NCBI GenBank assembly: GCA_964270895.1
Contig: OZ185441.1
Origin: Podarcis filfolensis
Taxonomy: Eukaryota
Length of the DNA: 64,000 nt
Direction: 5' to 3' (one strand)
Below are positions 11,799-54,585 of the stretch, one piece after another. How positions within the stretch are numbered: position 1 is the first letter of the stretch; each line of letters opens with the position of its first letter. The notes under the pieces are model-generated. The model was given only the letters and a program-made list of their open reading frames with translations, made no database searches and had not been told where the DNA came from. Position numbers and translations under genes: made by a program.

Positions 11799-11988
11799 NN
11801 NNNNNNNNNNNNNNNNNNNNNNNNNNNNNNNNNNNNNNNNNNNNNNNNNNNNNNNNNNNNNNNNNNNNNNNNNNNNNNNNNNNNNNNNNNNNNNNNNNNN
11901 NNNNNNNNNNNNNNNNNNNNNNNNNNNNNNNNNNNNNNNNNNNNNNNNNNNNNNNNNNNNNNNNNNNNNNNNNNNNNNNNNNNNNNNN
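11799..11988. other. Assembly gap (190 N)
   Basis: Run of N. Confidence 1.
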
Positions 11989-23010: not shown

Positions 23011-23115
23011 AAAGGTAAAGGGACCCCTGACCATTAGGTCCAGTCATGACCGACTCTGGGGTTGCGGCGCTCATCTTGCTTTATTGGCTGAGGGAGCAGG
23101 CGTACAGCTTCCAGG
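23011..23115 (-). mobile_element. Sauria-type SINE, 3' fragment
   Basis: aaaggtaaagggacccctgaccattaggtccagt... (reverse of the ACCTTT tail); near identical to the copy at 48666. Confidence 0.85.
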
Positions 23116-36144: not shown

Positions 36145-36307
36145 GCTGTTGTGCTCTGGTTCGCCAGAAGCAGCTTAGTCCTGCTGGCCACATGACCCGG
36201 AAGCTGTACACCGGCTCCCTCGGCCAATAAAGCGAGATGAGCACCGCAACCCCAGAGTCAGTCATGACTGGACCTATACGGTCAAGGGTCCCTTTACCTT
36301 TACCTTT
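36145..36307 (+). mobile_element. Sauria-type SINE, 5'-truncated, with (ACCTTT)n tail
   Basis: ctctggttcgccagaagcagcttagtcctgctggccacatgacccggaag...gtccctttacctttaccttt. Confidence 0.85.
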
Positions 36308-39200: not shown

Positions 39201-40179
39201 GAGTTTACAGATATACTCATCAGTATAGTACATACCCATATGCGCCTACTTAAACATTAAGATCTTCTACGGTCCTTCTTCAGGAGGTGCATGTGGTAGC
39301 TACTGACAAAAAGGTGTTTTCATTTATAGTACCCTGGCTATAAAATGCTCTCCTCAAAGAGGCTCATCACATGCCTAATCTGATGTCATTTCAGTAAAAC
39401 CTTTTCATTGTTCCAGGCCTTTAAATCTGCTACTGCTACAAAAAAATCATTATCACTAGATAATGATAATGTTATATATTTTATAGATTTATTATGCATA
39501 TTTTAATCGCCTTTATATTTGTTGTAAGGCACCCCGAGAACATGGTTACAGGGTGGCAAATAAAGATTTCAAACTAATAAAATAGATCCAGATTTCAAAA
39601 GAACAAAATATGTTTCTCTTAATGTAACAAGCAACCTACGTTGTACAGCAATAAGTTGTGTGGATATGAGAAACCCAGGTAGAGCCCTGCTTCTACCAAT
39701 TTGTTCAATTAAGATCAAATGACTGTTTGACCCATCACACATTTGGGAATAGCTAGAAAACTGTGAGAAGGGGGAGCTCTAAAAGTGTGTGAGTTACTTC
39801 TTTCCTCCCAGAAGAGGCCTTTGACTTTTCAGCATACAACATTTTGAGACGTTTCATTTGCTAGTAACATTTGTTCTTGGGAGGCTGCTTGTTTTTCCAT
39901 TTCATAATCCCCCCCCCATTTGCCTTCACTAAGTGTCAAAATGAAGGAGTCACGGCGTGTCTGTGTGTTGATATGGGGCATTCACCCATCATTTCTACTT
40001 TCCTTGGATTTATCTATGACTCCCCACCTTCCCTCGTTCACCCCACCTTTGCAAACGACTGTCAAGACCTGTTACTTTTTCTTCTCTTAAGATCTGCAAG
40101 AGGCAATCTTTCTTATCTGCACCCTGGTAGTCACCTGTCCAGAGTTTTGCATTTTGATCTGTCCTCTTAGCCCCCTCTG

Positions 40180-40920
<741 letters not shown>

Positions 40921-41219
40921 CTGCCATCGCAAAGCATGCCTTTTATTTGTGAGGGCAAACTACTCCACATTTTAAAGTGAGTTTCTGGTATCTAAAAAAC
41001 ATGACATCCCAATGGCGCATTATGGGGTATGCCCTCCAGCTTATTCATAGCTTTCACCTCTGAAATTTAAAACCAGAGGCTGGGCTGCCACCTGTCAGGG
41101 GTGCTGGAGTCCTCTCTCCTGTATTGTGGGTTCTGCGTTGAGCACTACGTGACACCCAAGATCCCTTTCACCTCTTAAAATTCTATGAAACGTTCGTTTT
41201 GAATGAACATATAAGAACG

Positions 41220-41416
41220 GGTTACAGATAGGTAGCCGTGTTGGTCTGCCATAGTCAAAACAAAAAAATTTTTTTTTCTTTCCAGTAGCACCTTAAAGAC
41301 CAACTAAGTTAGTTCTTGGTATGAGCTTTCGTGTGCATGCACACGAAAGCTCATACCAAGAACTAACTTAGTTGGTCTTTAAGGTGCTACTGGAAAGAAA
41401 AATTTTTTTTTTGTTT
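41220..41416 (-). mobile_element. Fold-back Penelope-like terminal-repeat insertion; 12-bp TSD CATATAAGAACG (41208-41219 / 41417-41428); contains a 130-bp perfect palindrome at 41273-41402
   Basis: Base-by-base symmetry about 41337/41338; exact flanking direct repeat; near identity to the 52761-52979 copy. The Penelope assignment rests on the hammerhead-bearing repeat (inference from established knowledge). Confidence 0.85.
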
Positions 41417-42410
41417 CATATAAGAACGCATCCCCTTCTCTGCTCCCCCATAACCAATGCATTTTCATCTGTTGAGGCACTCCTCATATTCTGCATCACC
41501 GTGTTGTTCTTGACTCTGTGCACACACCATACTTTTAAGACTGTGCACGCACTATACCTTTTTTAAGTACTGTACATTTATCCCTCTGTTACAATTCCCA
41601 GCAACCCTTAACAAACTACAGTGCCCAGAATTCTCTGAGGGAATAATGTAGGGCATAGGGGCGTGTTCTTTAACTCTCATTTGCTTAGAAACAGAGCTTC
41701 TAGATTTCCCCTAATATAGTCAAGAGCAGAGAGAAAGTGAGTTCTTATATGTCTCTATATTGAGGAGAGATCTCGCCATTCTAGAAAGTGAAAGAACATC
41801 ACGCCTATATTCCAGGGTGCGGAATAAAAACATGCGCAAAGTACCCACAGAGTGGCCAGGCCAGACTCAACTGGGTCCGCCTAAAAAGTAGCGGGATGTT
41901 ATCGCCTTCGGTTTCCAACAACATTGCCTAGCTAGCCTTTGATTGTGCAGTTTGCACTCGCTCCGCGACGAAGTGATAGCAAAAACAACATGTTTTTCCG
42001 AGCATGCACAGAGCGCCCGCCCTTGGCCGCTGAGCAACCACGCGCAACTCTCAAAACACCTGACGTTAAAAGGATTTAAAGGAGGGTCGAGTAGGACTTA
42101 GCACCTTTCCTTTTCAGGAGACAAACCCCCCTTAAGGCGCTGTTCTACTGAGCTACAGGTTTTAGGCCGGGTTTCCGACAAGCACCAGGGGGAGCTGTTC
42201 GTGCGCAGCAGCCCCGTCCCCTCTCCGGCCGTTAGGCTGGCTCCTCCCCGAGAAGGCGGAGGGCTGGAGCGACTTCGGCGGAGCGGCGAGGCGAGGCGAC
42301 GGGAGGCGCTGCCGTAGCAGCTGTTTGACAACCCGCCGGCGGCTGGGCCTCTCCGGAGCGAGAGGTGCGTTTCGGGCGGGTTCCGAGCGGCTGCAGCTCC
42401 AAAGACCTCG

Positions 42411-42413
<3 letters not shown>

Positions 42414-42452
<39 letters not shown>
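42414..42452. repeat. (GA)19 microsatellite
   Basis: Read directly from the sequence. Confidence 0.98.
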
Positions 42453-42455
<3 letters not shown>

Positions 42456-42835
42456 CGCACCCGTCCGGTAACTTGGGTCGCTCTCTGGAGAGGGTTGGGA
42501 AGTGCGCGCAAAGAGCGCATCCCTCTTCCCTGGGGGTGGAATATTCGCCCGAAGTAGAGGAGGGTGAGGAAGGGGCGTCTTGGCGCGCGCGGGGTGCTGA
42601 GGGAAGTCCCCGCATGCATCCTTTAAGAGTTTGGGGGCAGTTTGGGGCTCTCCTCGAGGGGCTTCGCTCGGGTAGGGGGGAGTTTTTGTGCGCGCAAAAT
42701 CCTCTTTTTTTGGGTGGGGGGAATGTTGCACCTTGGAGTCTTATTCCTCGGACTGGGAGTTGCGCCTTTCTTTAGAGGAGCGCAGACTGCGCGGGTCCAG
42801 GAGTGCGGAGAGGCCCCGGGTTTTGTTGTAATCTG

Positions 42836-42848
42836 GTTGCCTAACAAC
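42836..42848. promoter_or_regulatory. RFX X-box-like motif GTTGCCTAACAAC
   Basis: One mismatch to the 13-bp X-box GTTGCCTAGCAAC. Confidence 0.5.
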
Positions 42849-45800
42849 GCCGTATAGCTTCTTAAAGCGACCGACGCCCTGGGCAGGCGTGGAAGCAACA
42901 GTTGCTCTTCTCTTCCGAGCCCACCCTTTCTTTCCTCAACCTCCCCTATCCTATGACTCCCTTTGCTGATGCCTGGAGATAGGGAAGGTTTCTGCTCTCG
43001 GGTATCTGTGGCGCCTTAAAACATTTCGCATGGATGTGAAGAAGGGCTTCAAAGACGAAAATATGTAAAGTTACCAGGCCATGAACGAGCAGCATCTGTT
43101 CAAGGGACTCTTCTTATGGACGGTCAAGACAGTTTTGTCATAAGCGTCTAGCTTTATGAATACCTCCCAAAATACATAAAATGTGATTGTAAGTATGTTT
43201 ACTCAGAAGCAAATGTGGCCGAGTGCAATGGTGCTTACTAATAAGTGTACAAGGGATTGTAACTTTAGTATTAAGGAATGGCTAGTGGTAGTGTGAAACG
43301 TCTCAAAAGCATTAAAGCCAACAAATAATATATCAGAAGGCCAGTGATCATTCCCACCATTTAGTGAATAGAAGTCTGTTTCATTTACAAACTGGTTTGC
43401 TAGTGAACCTGTTAGTCAGACTATTGCATATAGATTTCTTCAATGAGTGGTTTTGAAGCAATCTTGGTTCATTGTTATGGCCTGCAATAAATGTCTGTGA
43501 AAGGCTTCTTGGTCTTAGTAACAAATAGAGGTTTTTACCAAGTAAAAATTGAGGTTGGGATGCATTTCCAATATATTCAGCACCAGTCTAGAAACAGGTG
43601 GGCCACTTGTTGAGTGTGCAGTGCAGGCTTTATAAATTTTGCTGCAGAGGGCAAAAGACTGCACTGCTACTGCCTCAGTTGAATTCAGCAGGGCTGACTT
43701 ATGAGCTGCCATGATTAAAATTGCAGTTCTCTCTTACTAACACTTATTTACCTGGAAGTAAGCCCCATTGAATGCTTGCTTCTGAGTAGACATGACTCAG
43801 GGCAGAATATTTGCTGCCACCTGGGGCATATCCTCTAGCTCCAGCACTGCAGGTGTGTTAAATAACACTGGCATAGTTGGATCATTATCTTCTGAAGCCA
43901 CAGCTCCCTCTTTTCGTGATATCACTGCCAAAGCCAAAGGTCTAGTAAGTGAGGTTTTCCCTGTGGTGACATTGGTGGAACTAACTGTAGAAATCTCTTA
44001 AAGGATATCTGATTCCCACTGTCATTGACCATGCAGGCTGCTCTTTCAGTGACCTGACTGGACTGGTGAAAAAGCAGGTTGACCTTTTGTCACTAGCATG
44101 GTTTATTTAGTGCATTTTTACTCTGCTGTTCAGCCAAAAAGGCTTCCAGAGTAGCTTACATATTATCAATAAAAAATAAGTTTTGTAATCTAAAATACAT
44201 GACACAAAAATGAAAAAAGGATGGGGAGGAAAGAGGTGGGTAAAGCAAACTCAGACACCAAAGTTAAATAGCAGTTTTTATAGTAACCAGCTGGAATGAA
44301 AACAGTTCCAGGATAGGAGGAGCCTGACAGAACTGACCTTTCAGTAGAATGCTGATGGATTGGCCCTGCTTGACAACTGCTGCAACCTATTGGAGTGGTT
44401 GCTCTTTGGCAATCACCTCCACCTTGTTGTTGAGTCTGGTTTACATTAGGCAGGTGGTTGGTGAAGTTCAAGAGTAGATACTCAACTGGCACTGATGCTG
44501 AACAACTGAGCAGCAGGGGTTCTCTTCAAAGAACTTGACAGTGTTTGTGGTGATGAAAAGCTCTGCTGTTGCCATTTTTGTAACAGTACCATCTGACAAG
44601 GCATTTCTGGTAATTCCAGGCCATCTGTGTTTGAAGGTCAGGTTCTCTCTGTGGTTCACTATTACTTGCTTGCCATATACCGTACTTTGACAACAATGCT
44701 GGAGTTTCTTTTTGAAGTGCTGCACAAGAGGTTCCAATACGTATAACCATCATACTGCTGCAGGGAGGCAGGAGAGGAGTTCTGACCTTTCGTTGTAGAA
44801 TCTTTTCCCCCTGGGGGCTTTCAAGGGATACTGCTCATGAGGAAACTCTTACGCTATGCTTTAGCCAAACTTCTTCCTTTGCAGGGATTACAATTATTCT
44901 GTGAACCGCCCTGAGACCCCCCAGGTGTAGGGCGGTATATAATTAAATAAATAATAACTTGGTGTGAATACTAGGACCAAACTATAAGATTGGCTTTATG
45001 TATTGTCTGATGCTAATTGGCATTGAGATCTCAAATGGCTGCTTGGCTTGTGAGGGGAGAGTAACTGAAAATTTTGTCTCTCACTGATGAATTGGTAAAC
45101 TTTTGCTTACTTATTTACAGCATTTTTATACTGCACAGTAATAAGTTACCTGCATGGTAGACATTTTTTAGGATATAATATATAGACATATGAACTTAAC
45201 AAGTTAAAATAACTGCTGTTTTCTGTAGCACTTTGACCTGAACTTATGAATGTTTGATCCTGAACTGATGGACAGGTCTTCAGAGGCTGGTTCACAGCAG
45301 AAAATAGCAGGCAAAATAGGTCGGCTAATGTCAAGTGATTGACAAGTGAGTGGCCCCATGCACCTTTCAAACTTGTCCTGTGTAGGGAGATAACAATCTG
45401 TCCTACCAGTCCTGTTCTAAGGACGTGTATTTTATCAGCATGCAAACTAATGTGATTAAGGATTTAGAGGAGTCCAAAAGGGAACTTATTTTTAGCATTG
45501 ATTGTTCTGTATCAGGAGGATTGTAATTGAATTATCCTAGAATGCAATTATTATTATTATTATTTGAACTTCCTGCATATTGACTTCATGTGAGAGAGTA
45601 AGTGGTAAAGAAATAGTTATTATCTGTGGTACATATTCTGTGCACACTTTTTCATGTAGGAAAGCTATCACATGAGTAATCAAGTTAATATGTACATGTG
45701 GGTTGCTGTTTAATTAGTATTGTATATTTATGACAACAAACACTTCCATCAATTTAACAATATCCATTTTTTCAGGTGTGTTTGTTATTTCTTCTAAACC

Positions 45801-47151: not shown

Positions 47152-47253
47152 ATGATGCCTGAGGACCTAGACCAGTTTCTTGAAGAACAAAAAGCAAAGC
47201 TGGCACAAGACAAAGCAAAGCTTGACAATGATCCACCTTACATGGAAATGCAG
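47152..47253 (+). CDS. CSPP1: CSPP1 first coding exon ([34 protein letters not shown]); exon starts at 47103
   Basis: aaaATGATG start, CAG|gtagga donor, acceptor ttgttgaag|G at 47102/47103. Confidence 0.9.
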
Positions 47254-48665: not shown

Positions 48666-48898
48666 CTTAAAAGGTAAAGGGACCCCTGACCATTAGGTCC
48701 AGTCGTGGCCGACTCTGGGGCTGCAGCGCTCATCTCGCTTTATTGGCCAAGGGAGCCGGCGTACAGCTTCCGGGTCATGTGGGCAGCATGACTAAGCCAC
48801 TTCTGGTGAACCAGAGCAGTGCACGGAAATGCCGTTTACCTTCCTGCCGGAGTGGTACCTATTTATCTGTGGTTTAACCCACAGCGCCACCCGCGTCC
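48666..48898 (-). mobile_element. Sauria-type SINE with internal deletion; 11-bp TSD CTGAATATACC
   Basis: TSD at 48655-48665 and 48899-48909; both ends present, about 120-130 nt missing relative to the 54215 copy. Confidence 0.88.
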
Positions 48899-51800: not shown

Positions 51801-52760
51801 TGCCTATGAGAATCTCACAAGCTGGACATGATGGTGATGTCCTTCTTCTGTTTGTTCTAGCAATTGGTATCTAATGATAAACCACCTCTGTCATTGGGAG
51901 TTCCATTTAGCGGATGTTAACACTTTTATGCCACACTTCAACAAACTATATTAGAGGGGGGAAAGCAATAGCATATTCTACTGACTAATGCAGGGCTTTA
52001 GCTGACAACGTAAACTAGGTACTACATGTGATGCTACTTACTAGTCAAGATTGTTCCCAGCTGCAGTTAGCTAAATATTTATTTTACAGTCTTGCCGTTG
52101 TACATATCTCTCTGCCTTTCTGTCAGCTGCAATGATGTTATAGGGTTAGCTTTGGTTGAAATAGTCCTATGATGTCACAAACAACAAACTTATGCAGAGG
52201 ATGTGGCCATTTTTGTTACACAGTATAATGTGCATTATGAGGTGCAAAAGTTAAATTGTTGTCATGTGCCCTCAGTTGCATAGTTTCCATGAACCAGAAT
52301 AGAGATTGGGAACTTTTTGGCCTTCCATATATTGCTGTCTCCAGCCACCATGGCTAACGGTCAAGAATTATGGGGGCTGTAGTCCAACAACATATGGAGG
52401 ACTATAGGATCTCCATCCCTGAACTCGAACTTTGTTTGAAAGTGTTTAAAATTATATATGTCTAAAGGTTTCATCCTTTGAAAATACTCCGCATATACCA
52501 GTGTTGAAACATGAACTAACTTTGAGACAACTACATAGTTCACTCTTTTGGAATTATCTCAGTGATTAGCTCAGCTAATTTTTTCTTTAAAGTAATACTG
52601 CTCTTTGGTTCCTTGGAATGTTATTGTAAGGTGTGTTTCTTTTAAATGGATACAGTTAGAGCGGCATACATTGATCTAATAAATTGTTTCATTCCGTTTG
52701 TAGATCATTTTCTTTCGAAATAGCGTATCAACCCTCACTTTCCTTCCAGATAAATATACT

Positions 52761-52979
52761 AAAAACAAAAAAAAAATATTTTCCTTCCAGTAGCACCTTA
52801 AAGACCAACTAAGTTAGTTCTTGGTATGAGCTTTCGTGTGCATGTATCTGAAGAAGTGTGCATGCACACGAAAGCTCATACTAAGAACTAACTTAGTTGG
52901 TCTTTAAGGTGTTACTGGAAGGAAAAAAATTTTTTTTGTTTTGACTATGGCAGACCAACACGGCTACCTATCTGTAACT
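52761..52979 (+). mobile_element. Fold-back Penelope-like terminal-repeat insertion; 13-bp TSD AGATAAATATACT (52748-52760 / 52980-52992)
   Basis: Inverted arms 52761-52844 and 52861-52942, a unique tail ending TATCTGTAAC, an exact TSD and an embedded hammerhead motif. Confidence 0.88.
52844..52881 (+). ncRNA. Minimal type I hammerhead ribozyme motif (Penelope-like-element type); predicted cleavage after C52877
   Basis: Stem I GUAU(52844-47)/AUAC(52878-81); core CUGAAGA (52848-54); stem II GUGUG/CACAC with CAUG loop; GAAA (52870-73); 1-bp stem III A-GC-U; CUC cleavage triplet. Confidence 0.8.
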
Positions 52980-53143
52980 AGATAAATATACTGTTCTGTT
53001 TCACTGTTTCTTAAAAATAAATAAATAGAAATTTACATAGTTTAATCCGAGGTAGCTTTAATCGCTCCTCTTTCACTGCTTTTTATAGCCAGCTTCCATT
53101 GCTTCACAACTCCGAGATTTCTTTAGTGACTTTGAAAGGGGAA

Positions 53144-53386: not shown

Positions 53387-54214
53387 GAGAATTAGGCTAA
53401 TCTTACCAGATTTTTTTCAATGAATCCTGGGACACTTTTCAACTTCAATGGATTTTGTATGGGGACTGATTTGTAAATCCGGGGACTGTCCCCCGGGAAA
53501 GGGGGACGTCTGGTAACCTTAAATTAGGCATTTGTCATAACCATGTGAAAAGTTGCTTTTGGCATTTTATTAAAGGACTAATAATGCTTTAGGTTTACAT
53601 GTTCTGATTGATATGCTTTGGGAGTTCTGCCATATGCATATTCACTGTGAAATAGGATCACATATGTGGCTTAAGAAATAAGTCTGATAGTATCCAACTA
53701 AGTTTCACTCAGAGTAAACCCATTGAAATTAATGAGCATGACCAAGTTGGGTCCATTAATGTTAATGTGTCTACTCTGAGTATAATTTATTTGAATACAG
53801 CCTTTAAGTATATCTCAAAAATATCGCAAATATACACAAGGTTGCCATTTCCATCATCTAGCTAGAGTGGCCAACCTTTAGTCACAATTTTTTTGGAAGT
53901 GCCTGTCAAGAGATAATCTTGCCAAGTTTTTCACCTTGGAGAAGAATGCATTCCCTTCTTTTCCTTTCTGAAGCTGCATGCAGATAAGATTAGGAAGGGG
54001 ATACATGTACTGTGGGTTCAGCTATGGAATAGGGGACAGCAAATGTCAGAACTCTTAAAAGCTTCATATGCCAGAACTCTTAAAGGCACTGTTTGGGGAG
54101 GAGCAGAGTTTGCAATTGCCTTTTATGTTCGGCAAAATTATTTTGTATCATTGAACAATATATACTGTACTTCGTATTGATTAATGGGCAGGCCTTGTAG
54201 TTAATTGGTGGTAA

Positions 54215-54585
54215 AGGTAAAGGTAAAGGACCCCTCACAGTTAAGTCCATTCGCAGACGACTCTGGGGTTGCGGTGCTCATCTCGCTTTACAGGCCGAGG
54301 GAGCTGGCGTTTGTCCGCAGACAGTTTTTCTGGGTCATGTGGCCAGCACGACTAAGCCGCTTCTGGCGAAACCAGAGCAGCGCATGGAAATGCCGTTTAC
54401 CTTCCTGCCGGAGCGGTACCTATTTATCTACTTACACTTTGGGGCGTGCTTTCGAACTGCTAGGTTGGCAGGAGCTGGGACCGAGCAACAGGAGCTCACC
54501 CCGTTGTAAGGATTTGAACCGCCGACCTTCTGATCGGCAAGCCCAAGAGGCTCGTGGTTTTAGACCACAGTGCCACCTGCATCCA
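54215..54585 (-). mobile_element. Full-length Sauria-type SINE with Pol III A/B boxes; 13-bp TSD TAATTGGTGGTAA
   Basis: TSD at 54202-54214 and 54586-54598; A box TGGCACTGTGG (54575-54565), B box GTTCAAATC (54519-54511), ACCTTT tail. Confidence 0.9.

Follow-up and report, generated by a model that had tools for sequence, protein, structure and literature searches.

Insertions of Penelope-like elements (PLEs) often carry an adjacent inverted, 5'-truncated copy, which gives rise to inverted repeats, and a tail of 30 to 40 bp at one end only (PMC8557442). In vitro, the purified PLE protein of Anolis cuts and extends both strands of its target and prefers AT-rich DNA; reverse transcription by this protein is initiated internally at two positions, and the tail corresponds to the distance between them (PMC11167929). 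The pseudo-LTRs of PLEs contain minimal hammerhead ribozymes (min-HHRs), in which helix I is short, an unpaired base lies on the 5' side of a stem II of unusual length, and helix III is reduced to a very small palindrome that lends itself to dimers. Turtles and snakes have such motifs, sometimes as pairs on opposite strands (PMC4209133). Short, non-autonomous, hammerhead-bearing relatives of PLEs with a mean length of 176 bp have been described in reptiles (preprint 10.64898/2026.07.22.740005).

Here, we analyzed a 197-bp insert which contains a perfect palindrome of 130 bp and is located at 41220-41416 of a 64-kb stretch of lizard DNA (the window, i.e., the whole stretch that was analyzed). 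Very probably, the palindrome is the main part of a short, non-coding, and very abundant PLE-type retroelement that was inserted very recently and would have been integrated by PLE activity supplied in trans; this assignment is based on insertion structure, the putative hammerhead motif of a second copy, and published descriptions. An earlier, sequence-only reading of this DNA had named an insertion, which stands, but had not given the source element of the palindrome, which we now take to be a PLE-type product.

Compared to described PLE insertions (Evgen'ev & Arkhipova; Craig et al. 2021, PMC8557442; Anolis 'PAc' Poseidon, PMC11167929), the insert is alike in its head-to-head arms, a tail of ~38 nt at one end, an AT-rich target, and a variable duplication, and a putative hammerhead motif lies near the junction in a second copy of its family. 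Reptiles are a host group known for PLEs, and the host of the insert is likewise a reptile. In contrast to these PLE insertions, the insert is only about 200 bp long and has neither an ORF nor a direct pair of pseudo-LTRs. Moreover, its junction falls exactly on the dyad of ribozyme stem II, a detail not found in the PLE literature compared. No element-like ORF of at least 170 amino acids and no autonomous PLE was found in the 64-kb window.

Two types of hammerhead-bearing sequences allowed further comparison. A second copy of the family within the window (copy B) resembles PLE min-HHRs (Cervera & de la Pena 2014, PMC4209133) in CUGAAGA, the unpaired base, the long stem II, GAAA, AGCU, and the 4-bp helix I, whereas in the insert each strand has retained no more than stem II and GAAAGCUC; lacking the catalytic CUGANGA, the insert cannot act as a ribozyme by itself. 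Non-LTR retrozymes of animals (Cervera & de la Pena 2020; Li, Clavereau & Pollet 2026) are also short, non-autonomous, hammerhead-bearing, and PLE-related. However, retrozymes are tandem direct units that give circular RNAs, whereas the copies described here are dispersed single insertions with inverted arms and at most one ribozyme motif: in a retrozyme, every unit of the direct tandem array bears a type I hammerhead, whereas we found one motif in copy B and none in the insert.

A perfect palindrome within a 197-bp insert

The insert is flanked on both sides by a 12-bp target-site duplication and comprises the following features:

41208-41219, no strand: left copy of the target-site duplication, CATATAAGAACG; exact direct repeat, and empty-site contigs join 41207 to 41417
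41220-41257, minus strand: non-palindromic tail of ~38 nt, carried by the long arm only; the element terminates at the outer end of this tail, and copy B has the same sequence at this end
41258-41272, no strand: A/T homopolymer tract, an imperfect mirror (A7T9 here versus A5T10 at 41398-41412, plus strand)
41273-41402, no strand: perfect spacer-less palindrome with two 65-nt arms; 65/65 pairs, fold of -86.1 kcal/mol
41331-41344, no strand: self-complementary 14-mer GTGTGCATGCACAC, equivalent to stem II of the family hammerhead and followed by GAAAGCTC on each strand; CUGANGA core absent, aligned with copy B
41403-41416, plus strand: outer end of the short arm, T10 GTTT, with no tail; from the sequence, the mirror check, and the alignment with copy B
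41417-41428, no strand: right copy of the target-site duplication; direct repeat and empty-site contigs

A base-by-base check revealed 65 of 65 complementary pairs around the centre between 41337 and 41338, and the first mismatches were four T:T pairs (41269-41272 with 41403-41406) located within the homopolymer. In a repeat search, the arms were 75 nt long (41263-41337 and 41338-41412), 95% complementary, and not separated by any spacer. Folded as single-stranded DNA, the sequence paired throughout 41258-41416 with -86.1 kcal/mol, compared to -18.6 ± 3.4 kcal/mol for shuffled sequences (z = -20). None of 200 shuffles was equally good, and the chance expectation for 65 perfect pairs, ~4^-65 per position, is negligible. 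Both the fold and the pairing are beyond the reach of chance.

The sequence-only reading had claimed this same 130-bp palindrome without a spacer, which the 65 pairs confirmed, as well as an imperfect symmetry extending through the homopolymers to 41258-41416, which is the span paired in the DNA fold. Its view that a 12-bp duplication marks an insertion also held, as CATATAAGAACG is present at 41208 and 41417 and occurs exactly twice in the 64-kb window, while the extent of the inserted DNA was refined to 41220-41416. The refined extent includes a stretch present on the left side only. Thus, the insert is not fully symmetrical: its left arm carries 38 extra nt (41220-41257) that have no mirror on the right side. 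At the terminus of this tail, 72 contigs of run X12 (see below) ceased to match at 41221 and continued into unrelated AT-rich sequence. The target of the insert consisted of 69% A+T over ~32 nt. The internal sequence of the insert is taken solely from the assembly, and the contigs compared came from four other samples.

Both arms of the insert meet at the dyad of GTGTGCATGCACAC, that is, of stem II, and the palindrome therefore has no spacer. Since a junction at this dyad removes the CUGANGA core, the insert is dead as a ribozyme. No CTGANGA was detected on either strand when both CUGANGA orientations of 41220-41416 were scanned.

Copy B and its putative hammerhead ribozyme

A blastn comparison of an arm of the insert with the window revealed a second copy at about 52756-52978 with 92-96% identity. 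This copy B is located 11.5 kb from the insert and contributes two features:

52761-52979, plus strand: second copy of the family, 219 bp, with the short arm at 52761-52843, a centre with the hammerhead core, and the long arm plus tail extending to 52979
52844-52881, plus strand: predicted minimal hammerhead motif, found at no other site when the 64 kb were scanned on either strand for CUGANGA-stem-GAAA

Copy B is bordered by a 13-bp duplication, AGATAAATATACT, at 52748-52760 and 52980-52992, and its target consisted of 70% A+T over ~32 nt. The inverted arms (52761-52843 and 52863-52942) are accompanied by a tail at 52943-52979, which is present at one end only and has the same sequence as the tail of the insert. 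Inverted arms of a truncated copy (41258-41337 and 41338-41416 in the insert), a tail of 30 to 40 bp at one end only, and an AT-rich target with a variable duplication (12 and 13 bp; 69% and 70% A+T) are thus PLE features present in the insert as well as in copy B. Because the duplications are unequal in length, the termini asymmetrical, and the loci independent, a retroelement family is indicated, and not a DNA transposon or a local accident. The inverted arms, the one-sided tail of 38 nt, the AT-rich target, and the variable duplication together point to PLE-type integration supplied in trans.

The centre of copy B equals the centre of the insert plus 20 nt, and these extra bases complete a Penelope-type minimal hammerhead motif. 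Conversely, the insert can formally be derived from copy B by taking out exactly 20 nt, which are flanked by the 8-nt direct repeat GTGTGCAT. In order, the motif of copy B comprises GUAU, CUGAAGA, an unpaired A, stem II (GUGUGC-AU-GCACAC), GAAA, GC, and UC. The predicted cut would occur after 52877, and the AUAC behind it pairs with the GUAU at the start of the motif. As in PLE min-HHRs, helix I has 4 bp, an unpaired base precedes a long stem II on its 5' side, and a palindromic AGCU replaces helix III. We consider this a motif match to the hammerhead and the sequence a putative ribozyme. At E <= 10, Rfam listed no hammerhead family for 40000-43000 and 52600-53100, as is to be expected for minimal motifs without helix III. 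In the predicted fold of the full-length RNA of copy B, the motif was buried in a long hairpin (-136 kcal/mol), which would compete with the ribozyme fold.

Direct comparison of copy to copy comprised these two copies only. Within each of them, one variant was common to both arms (T/A at 41279/41396 in the insert, C/G in copy B), which fits arms that were copied from one template. The arms of copy B differed from each other at two positions (52826 and the 52904 region), where the long arm has A and the short arm, like both arms of the insert, has G; because of these differences, copy B appears to be either older than the insert or copied with errors. The A/T tract also differed between the long and the short arm, and did so in the same direction in both copies (41258-41283 versus 41392-41416; 52761-52788 versus 52917-52942). 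In sense orientation, the long arm has A9T7 (insert) or A7T8 (copy B), and the short arm has A5T10 or A4-TA-T10, respectively.

Empty site, age, and abundance of the family

Four contig sets were compared over 40750-41950: X2 (organism A), X4 (organism B), X5 (organism C), and X12 (organism D). All compared runs consist of contigs, which show presence better than absence. X2, X4, and X5 each contained one contig that matched from 40750 to 41207 and continued at 41417, with 209 nt skipped and 12 ambiguous letters. These contigs represent a precise empty site with a single CATATAAGAACG, and their flanks and the window were about 0.7-1.1% diverged. Bridging contigs had a depth of 10.7 in X2, 1031 in X4, and 23.5 in X5. 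Since this depth equaled that of neighboring single-copy contigs in X2 (10.7 versus 11.0) and X5 (23.5 versus 23.6), both samples look homozygous for the empty site. X12, with flanks diverged by about 5%, was also without the insert, and 91 letters replaced the 243 letters of the window at 41196-41438. An empty site would have had 34 letters instead of 91 in this region, and X12 may have acquired a separate small insertion, or an indel, at this AT-rich position.

Taken together, this is a genuine insertion of recent date, which is either specific to the lineage or still segregates. Its young age follows from the perfect arms, the perfect duplication, and its absence from genomes that differ by ~1% in the flanks. 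In these respects, the expectations of the sequence-only reading were borne out: arrival by insertion by the duplication and by contigs of three related genomes that have the precise empty site, the predicted empty allele with a single CATATAAGAACG by X2, X4, and X5, and a very young age by the observations just given. Its suggestion that the insertion could be polymorphic gained support from the empty site in relatives. Precise excision in the relatives, instead of insertion here, was rejected as unparsimonious, as the same loss would be needed three or four times.

Over the element, the summed contig depth in X2 was 2.8-8.0 x 10^5, compared to about 11 on the flanks. This depth, about 10^4-10^5 times that of the flanks and not to be read as a copy number, shows that the element family is very abundant. 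Many family contigs matched only up to 41344 or only from 41331 and then continued with TTCTTCAGATAC or GTATCTGAAGAA, i.e., had centres of the copy B type. In X2, X4, and X12, short contigs crossed the centre without a gap (e.g., 41310-41378), indicating that spacer-less junctions are also present at other loci. No match to the 24-nt spacer-less centre was found in metagenome contigs. Near-equal variant frequencies at the mirror positions 41311/41364 were considered as covariation between the arms, but about one-third of the contigs fit both arms, so that these frequencies are mirrored by construction.

Joining of the arms and genomic setting

In the mechanism that we propose, a PLE reverse transcriptase/GIY-YIG endonuclease provided in trans would cut both target strands, and DNA copies of the 3' part of the element would be synthesized in both orientations, beginning at two start sites separated by about 38 nt, which would leave one arm with the tail and the other without. 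Stem II, the self-complementary part of their ends, would be the point at which the two copies are joined. The structure of the insert matches the in vitro findings for the Anolis PLE, whose protein extends both strands and uses two start sites, and it suggests a possible role for stem II in joining the arms.

As to when the spacer-less junction arose, we lean toward its formation at integration, which is favored by the variant common to both arms of each copy and by the different junctions of the insert and copy B. Inheritance from a folded-back source copy without the 20-nt centre is possible, but less probable. It is favored by the A/T tract, since two arms made from one RNA would not obviously give the same direction of difference in both copies. 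Alternatively, a copy might have arrived with the 20-nt hammerhead core and lost it in place by slippage between the 8-nt repeats GTGTGCAT. Hairpins promote replication slippage, and the loss of exactly 20 nt bounded by a direct repeat fits such an event. However, we regard this course as unlikely: 130 + 24 bases of this young copy show no further change, arrival in the present form is likelier than a 20-nt deletion within so short a time, and the gapless contigs that cross the centre elsewhere argue for a recurrent junction.

Tentatively, stem II of PLEs may act at the DNA level during integration, in that two DNA copies, which originate from the two cut strands of the target, or a single copy that has snapped back, pair via the 14-nt palindrome and thereby join the arms. 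If true, this would explain why three of the four arm ends in the window stop at the stem II dyad and why such insertions give spacer-less palindromes. It would possibly also explain why the unusually long stem II has been kept in PLE hammerheads despite poor cleavage.

The locus offers a clean and datable example of how PLE-type elements would build perfect palindromes. A target duplication, a one-sided tail, an exact empty site, and a junction on a self-complementary ribozyme stem are combined in one place, and copy B, 11.5 kb away, has its junction shifted by 20 nt. The family has been active very recently in this lizard lineage, and perfect palindromes in this genome should for this reason be read first as PLE products.

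The insert lies between two CpG islands, which are associated with the following host features:

40349-40498, minus strand: coding part of COPS5 exon 1, with the ATG at 40498-40496 and a CpG island at about 40001-41000; from translation and CpG profile
42001-43000, plus strand: second CpG island, presumed promoter or 5' exon of the plus-strand neighbor; G+C 0.58-0.63, CpG o/e 0.75-0.90

The distance from the insert to the ATG of COPS5 is 722 bp, with the insert upstream, and the gap between the islands in which it is located is CpG-poorer (G+C of 0.42). Exons 2 and 3 of COPS5 matched Pfam JAB with E = 4e-20 and 6e-12, respectively. For the plus-strand neighbor, the first coding exon recognized from open frames is at 47152-47253, and searches of its exons against Pfam, NCBIfam, and the ESM Atlas returned nothing usable. 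This gene is presumably CSPP1, in view of the human protein and of the gene order COPS5-CSPP1. In a literature search, CSPP1 and COPS5 were listed together in several studies, which does not by itself name the neighbor. The sequence-only reading had placed the palindrome between divergent COPS5 and CSPP1 promoters; this is correct for COPS5, as judged from the ATG and the JAB exons, while the name CSPP1 is presumptive.

Most likely, the insert is a neutral or slightly harmful young allele in a CpG-poor gap between two CpG-island promoters. As a young transposon allele specific to a lineage or an individual, it is probably of little matter to the host genes. Nothing in the present data suggests a use by the host, and the empty site in relatives argues against a conserved role, since COPS5 and its neighbor work there without the insert. 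The sequence-only reading had proposed that negative supercoiling between the divergent promoters favors extrusion of a cruciform, by which the palindrome would become a structural modulator of COPS5 and its neighbor or a fragile site. Bacteria, yeast, and mouse transgenes do not maintain long perfect palindromes stably. The insert provides such a palindrome, 130 bp long, perfect, and without a spacer, with a very stable intrastrand fold and a central stretch of 16 nt (41330-41345) in which purines and pyrimidines alternate, and it does so 722 bp upstream of the COPS5 ATG and between two CpG islands. Nevertheless, we consider this role highly unlikely. Three close relatives have an empty site and a fourth lacks the insert, which speaks against conservation. 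Moreover, the structure would be a by-product of family insertion that copy B shares, the centre has 53% G+C and is not of the AT-rich kind that favors easy extrusion, and the CpG-poor gap beside another repeat fragment has the appearance of tolerated junk space. The human PATRRs of the t(11;22) translocation and mouse palindromic transgenes are unstable long palindromes, and the insert resembles them as a (near-)perfect palindrome of at least 100 bp with no spacer, for which cruciform extrusion is conceivable in principle. In comparison to the PATRRs, which span several hundred bp, it is much shorter, its centre is not AT-rich, and it is the product of a transposon that gives rise to such structures by the thousands. 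No instability was observed, and the only alleles seen were the full insert of the window and the precise empty site. If the insert segregates, carriers and non-carriers would provide a natural test of a 130-bp perfect palindrome between promoters.

Two further readings concern the nature of the insert itself. The insert, or just its symmetrical centre, could have arisen through erroneous assembly of a high-copy inverted repeat or through a chimeric read of such a repeat, and the family is indeed extremely repetitive, palindromic, and hard to assemble. None of the four compared runs carries the insert at this locus, the best-matching run, X1, has only 0.81 of the sampled words, and the assembly contains gaps (e.g., N at 11799-11988). 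We nonetheless give an artefact very little credence, as the exact 12-bp duplication, which is single-copy in the empty allele, marks a real transposition; the ends and the tail are canonical for the family, both flanks are collinear with the locus, and spacer-less centres were also present in contigs of other genomes. Long inverted repeats combined with a target-site duplication would likewise be expected of a MITE, and a long hairpin might serve as a small-RNA gene, i.e., as a precursor of a microRNA or an endo-siRNA. This is extremely improbable on either count. Because only one side has the tail, the ends of the insert do not form a pair of inverted repeats; the duplication varies in length (12 and 13 bp), and copy B has a hammerhead motif typical of PLE retroelements. 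As for small RNAs, Rfam hits at a permissive E-value, among them mir-559 with 63 bits (gathering threshold 95) and MIR4208 with 64 bits (140), are what could be adduced; all microRNA families hit (mir-559, MIR4208, mir-3910, and others) reached 54-64 bits against thresholds of 95-140 and did so symmetrically on the strands. Such sub-threshold matches, which were obtained for both copies and on both strands, are generic to any long hairpin and were rejected. Furthermore, no RNA run contains the locus, with the run listing consisting of contig sets only.

Several other repeats were observed in the window. A (GA)19 microsatellite is located at 42414-42451, inside the second CpG island. At 41588-41643, 170 bp from the insert, we found a fragment of another very high-copy repeat that has no second copy in the window. 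Its summed contig depth was 2 x 10^4 to 1.2 x 10^5, compared to about 11-24 for the flanks, and about 180 contigs per run continued outside the fragment with common sequence. The run of N at 11799-11988 represents either an assembly gap or a masked stretch. Finally, a dispersed repeat of ~200 bp is present in four copies (54213-54429, 48670-48868, 36152-36307, and 23011-23103) with a mutual identity of about 81-82%; it is probably a SINE and unrelated to the palindromic family.
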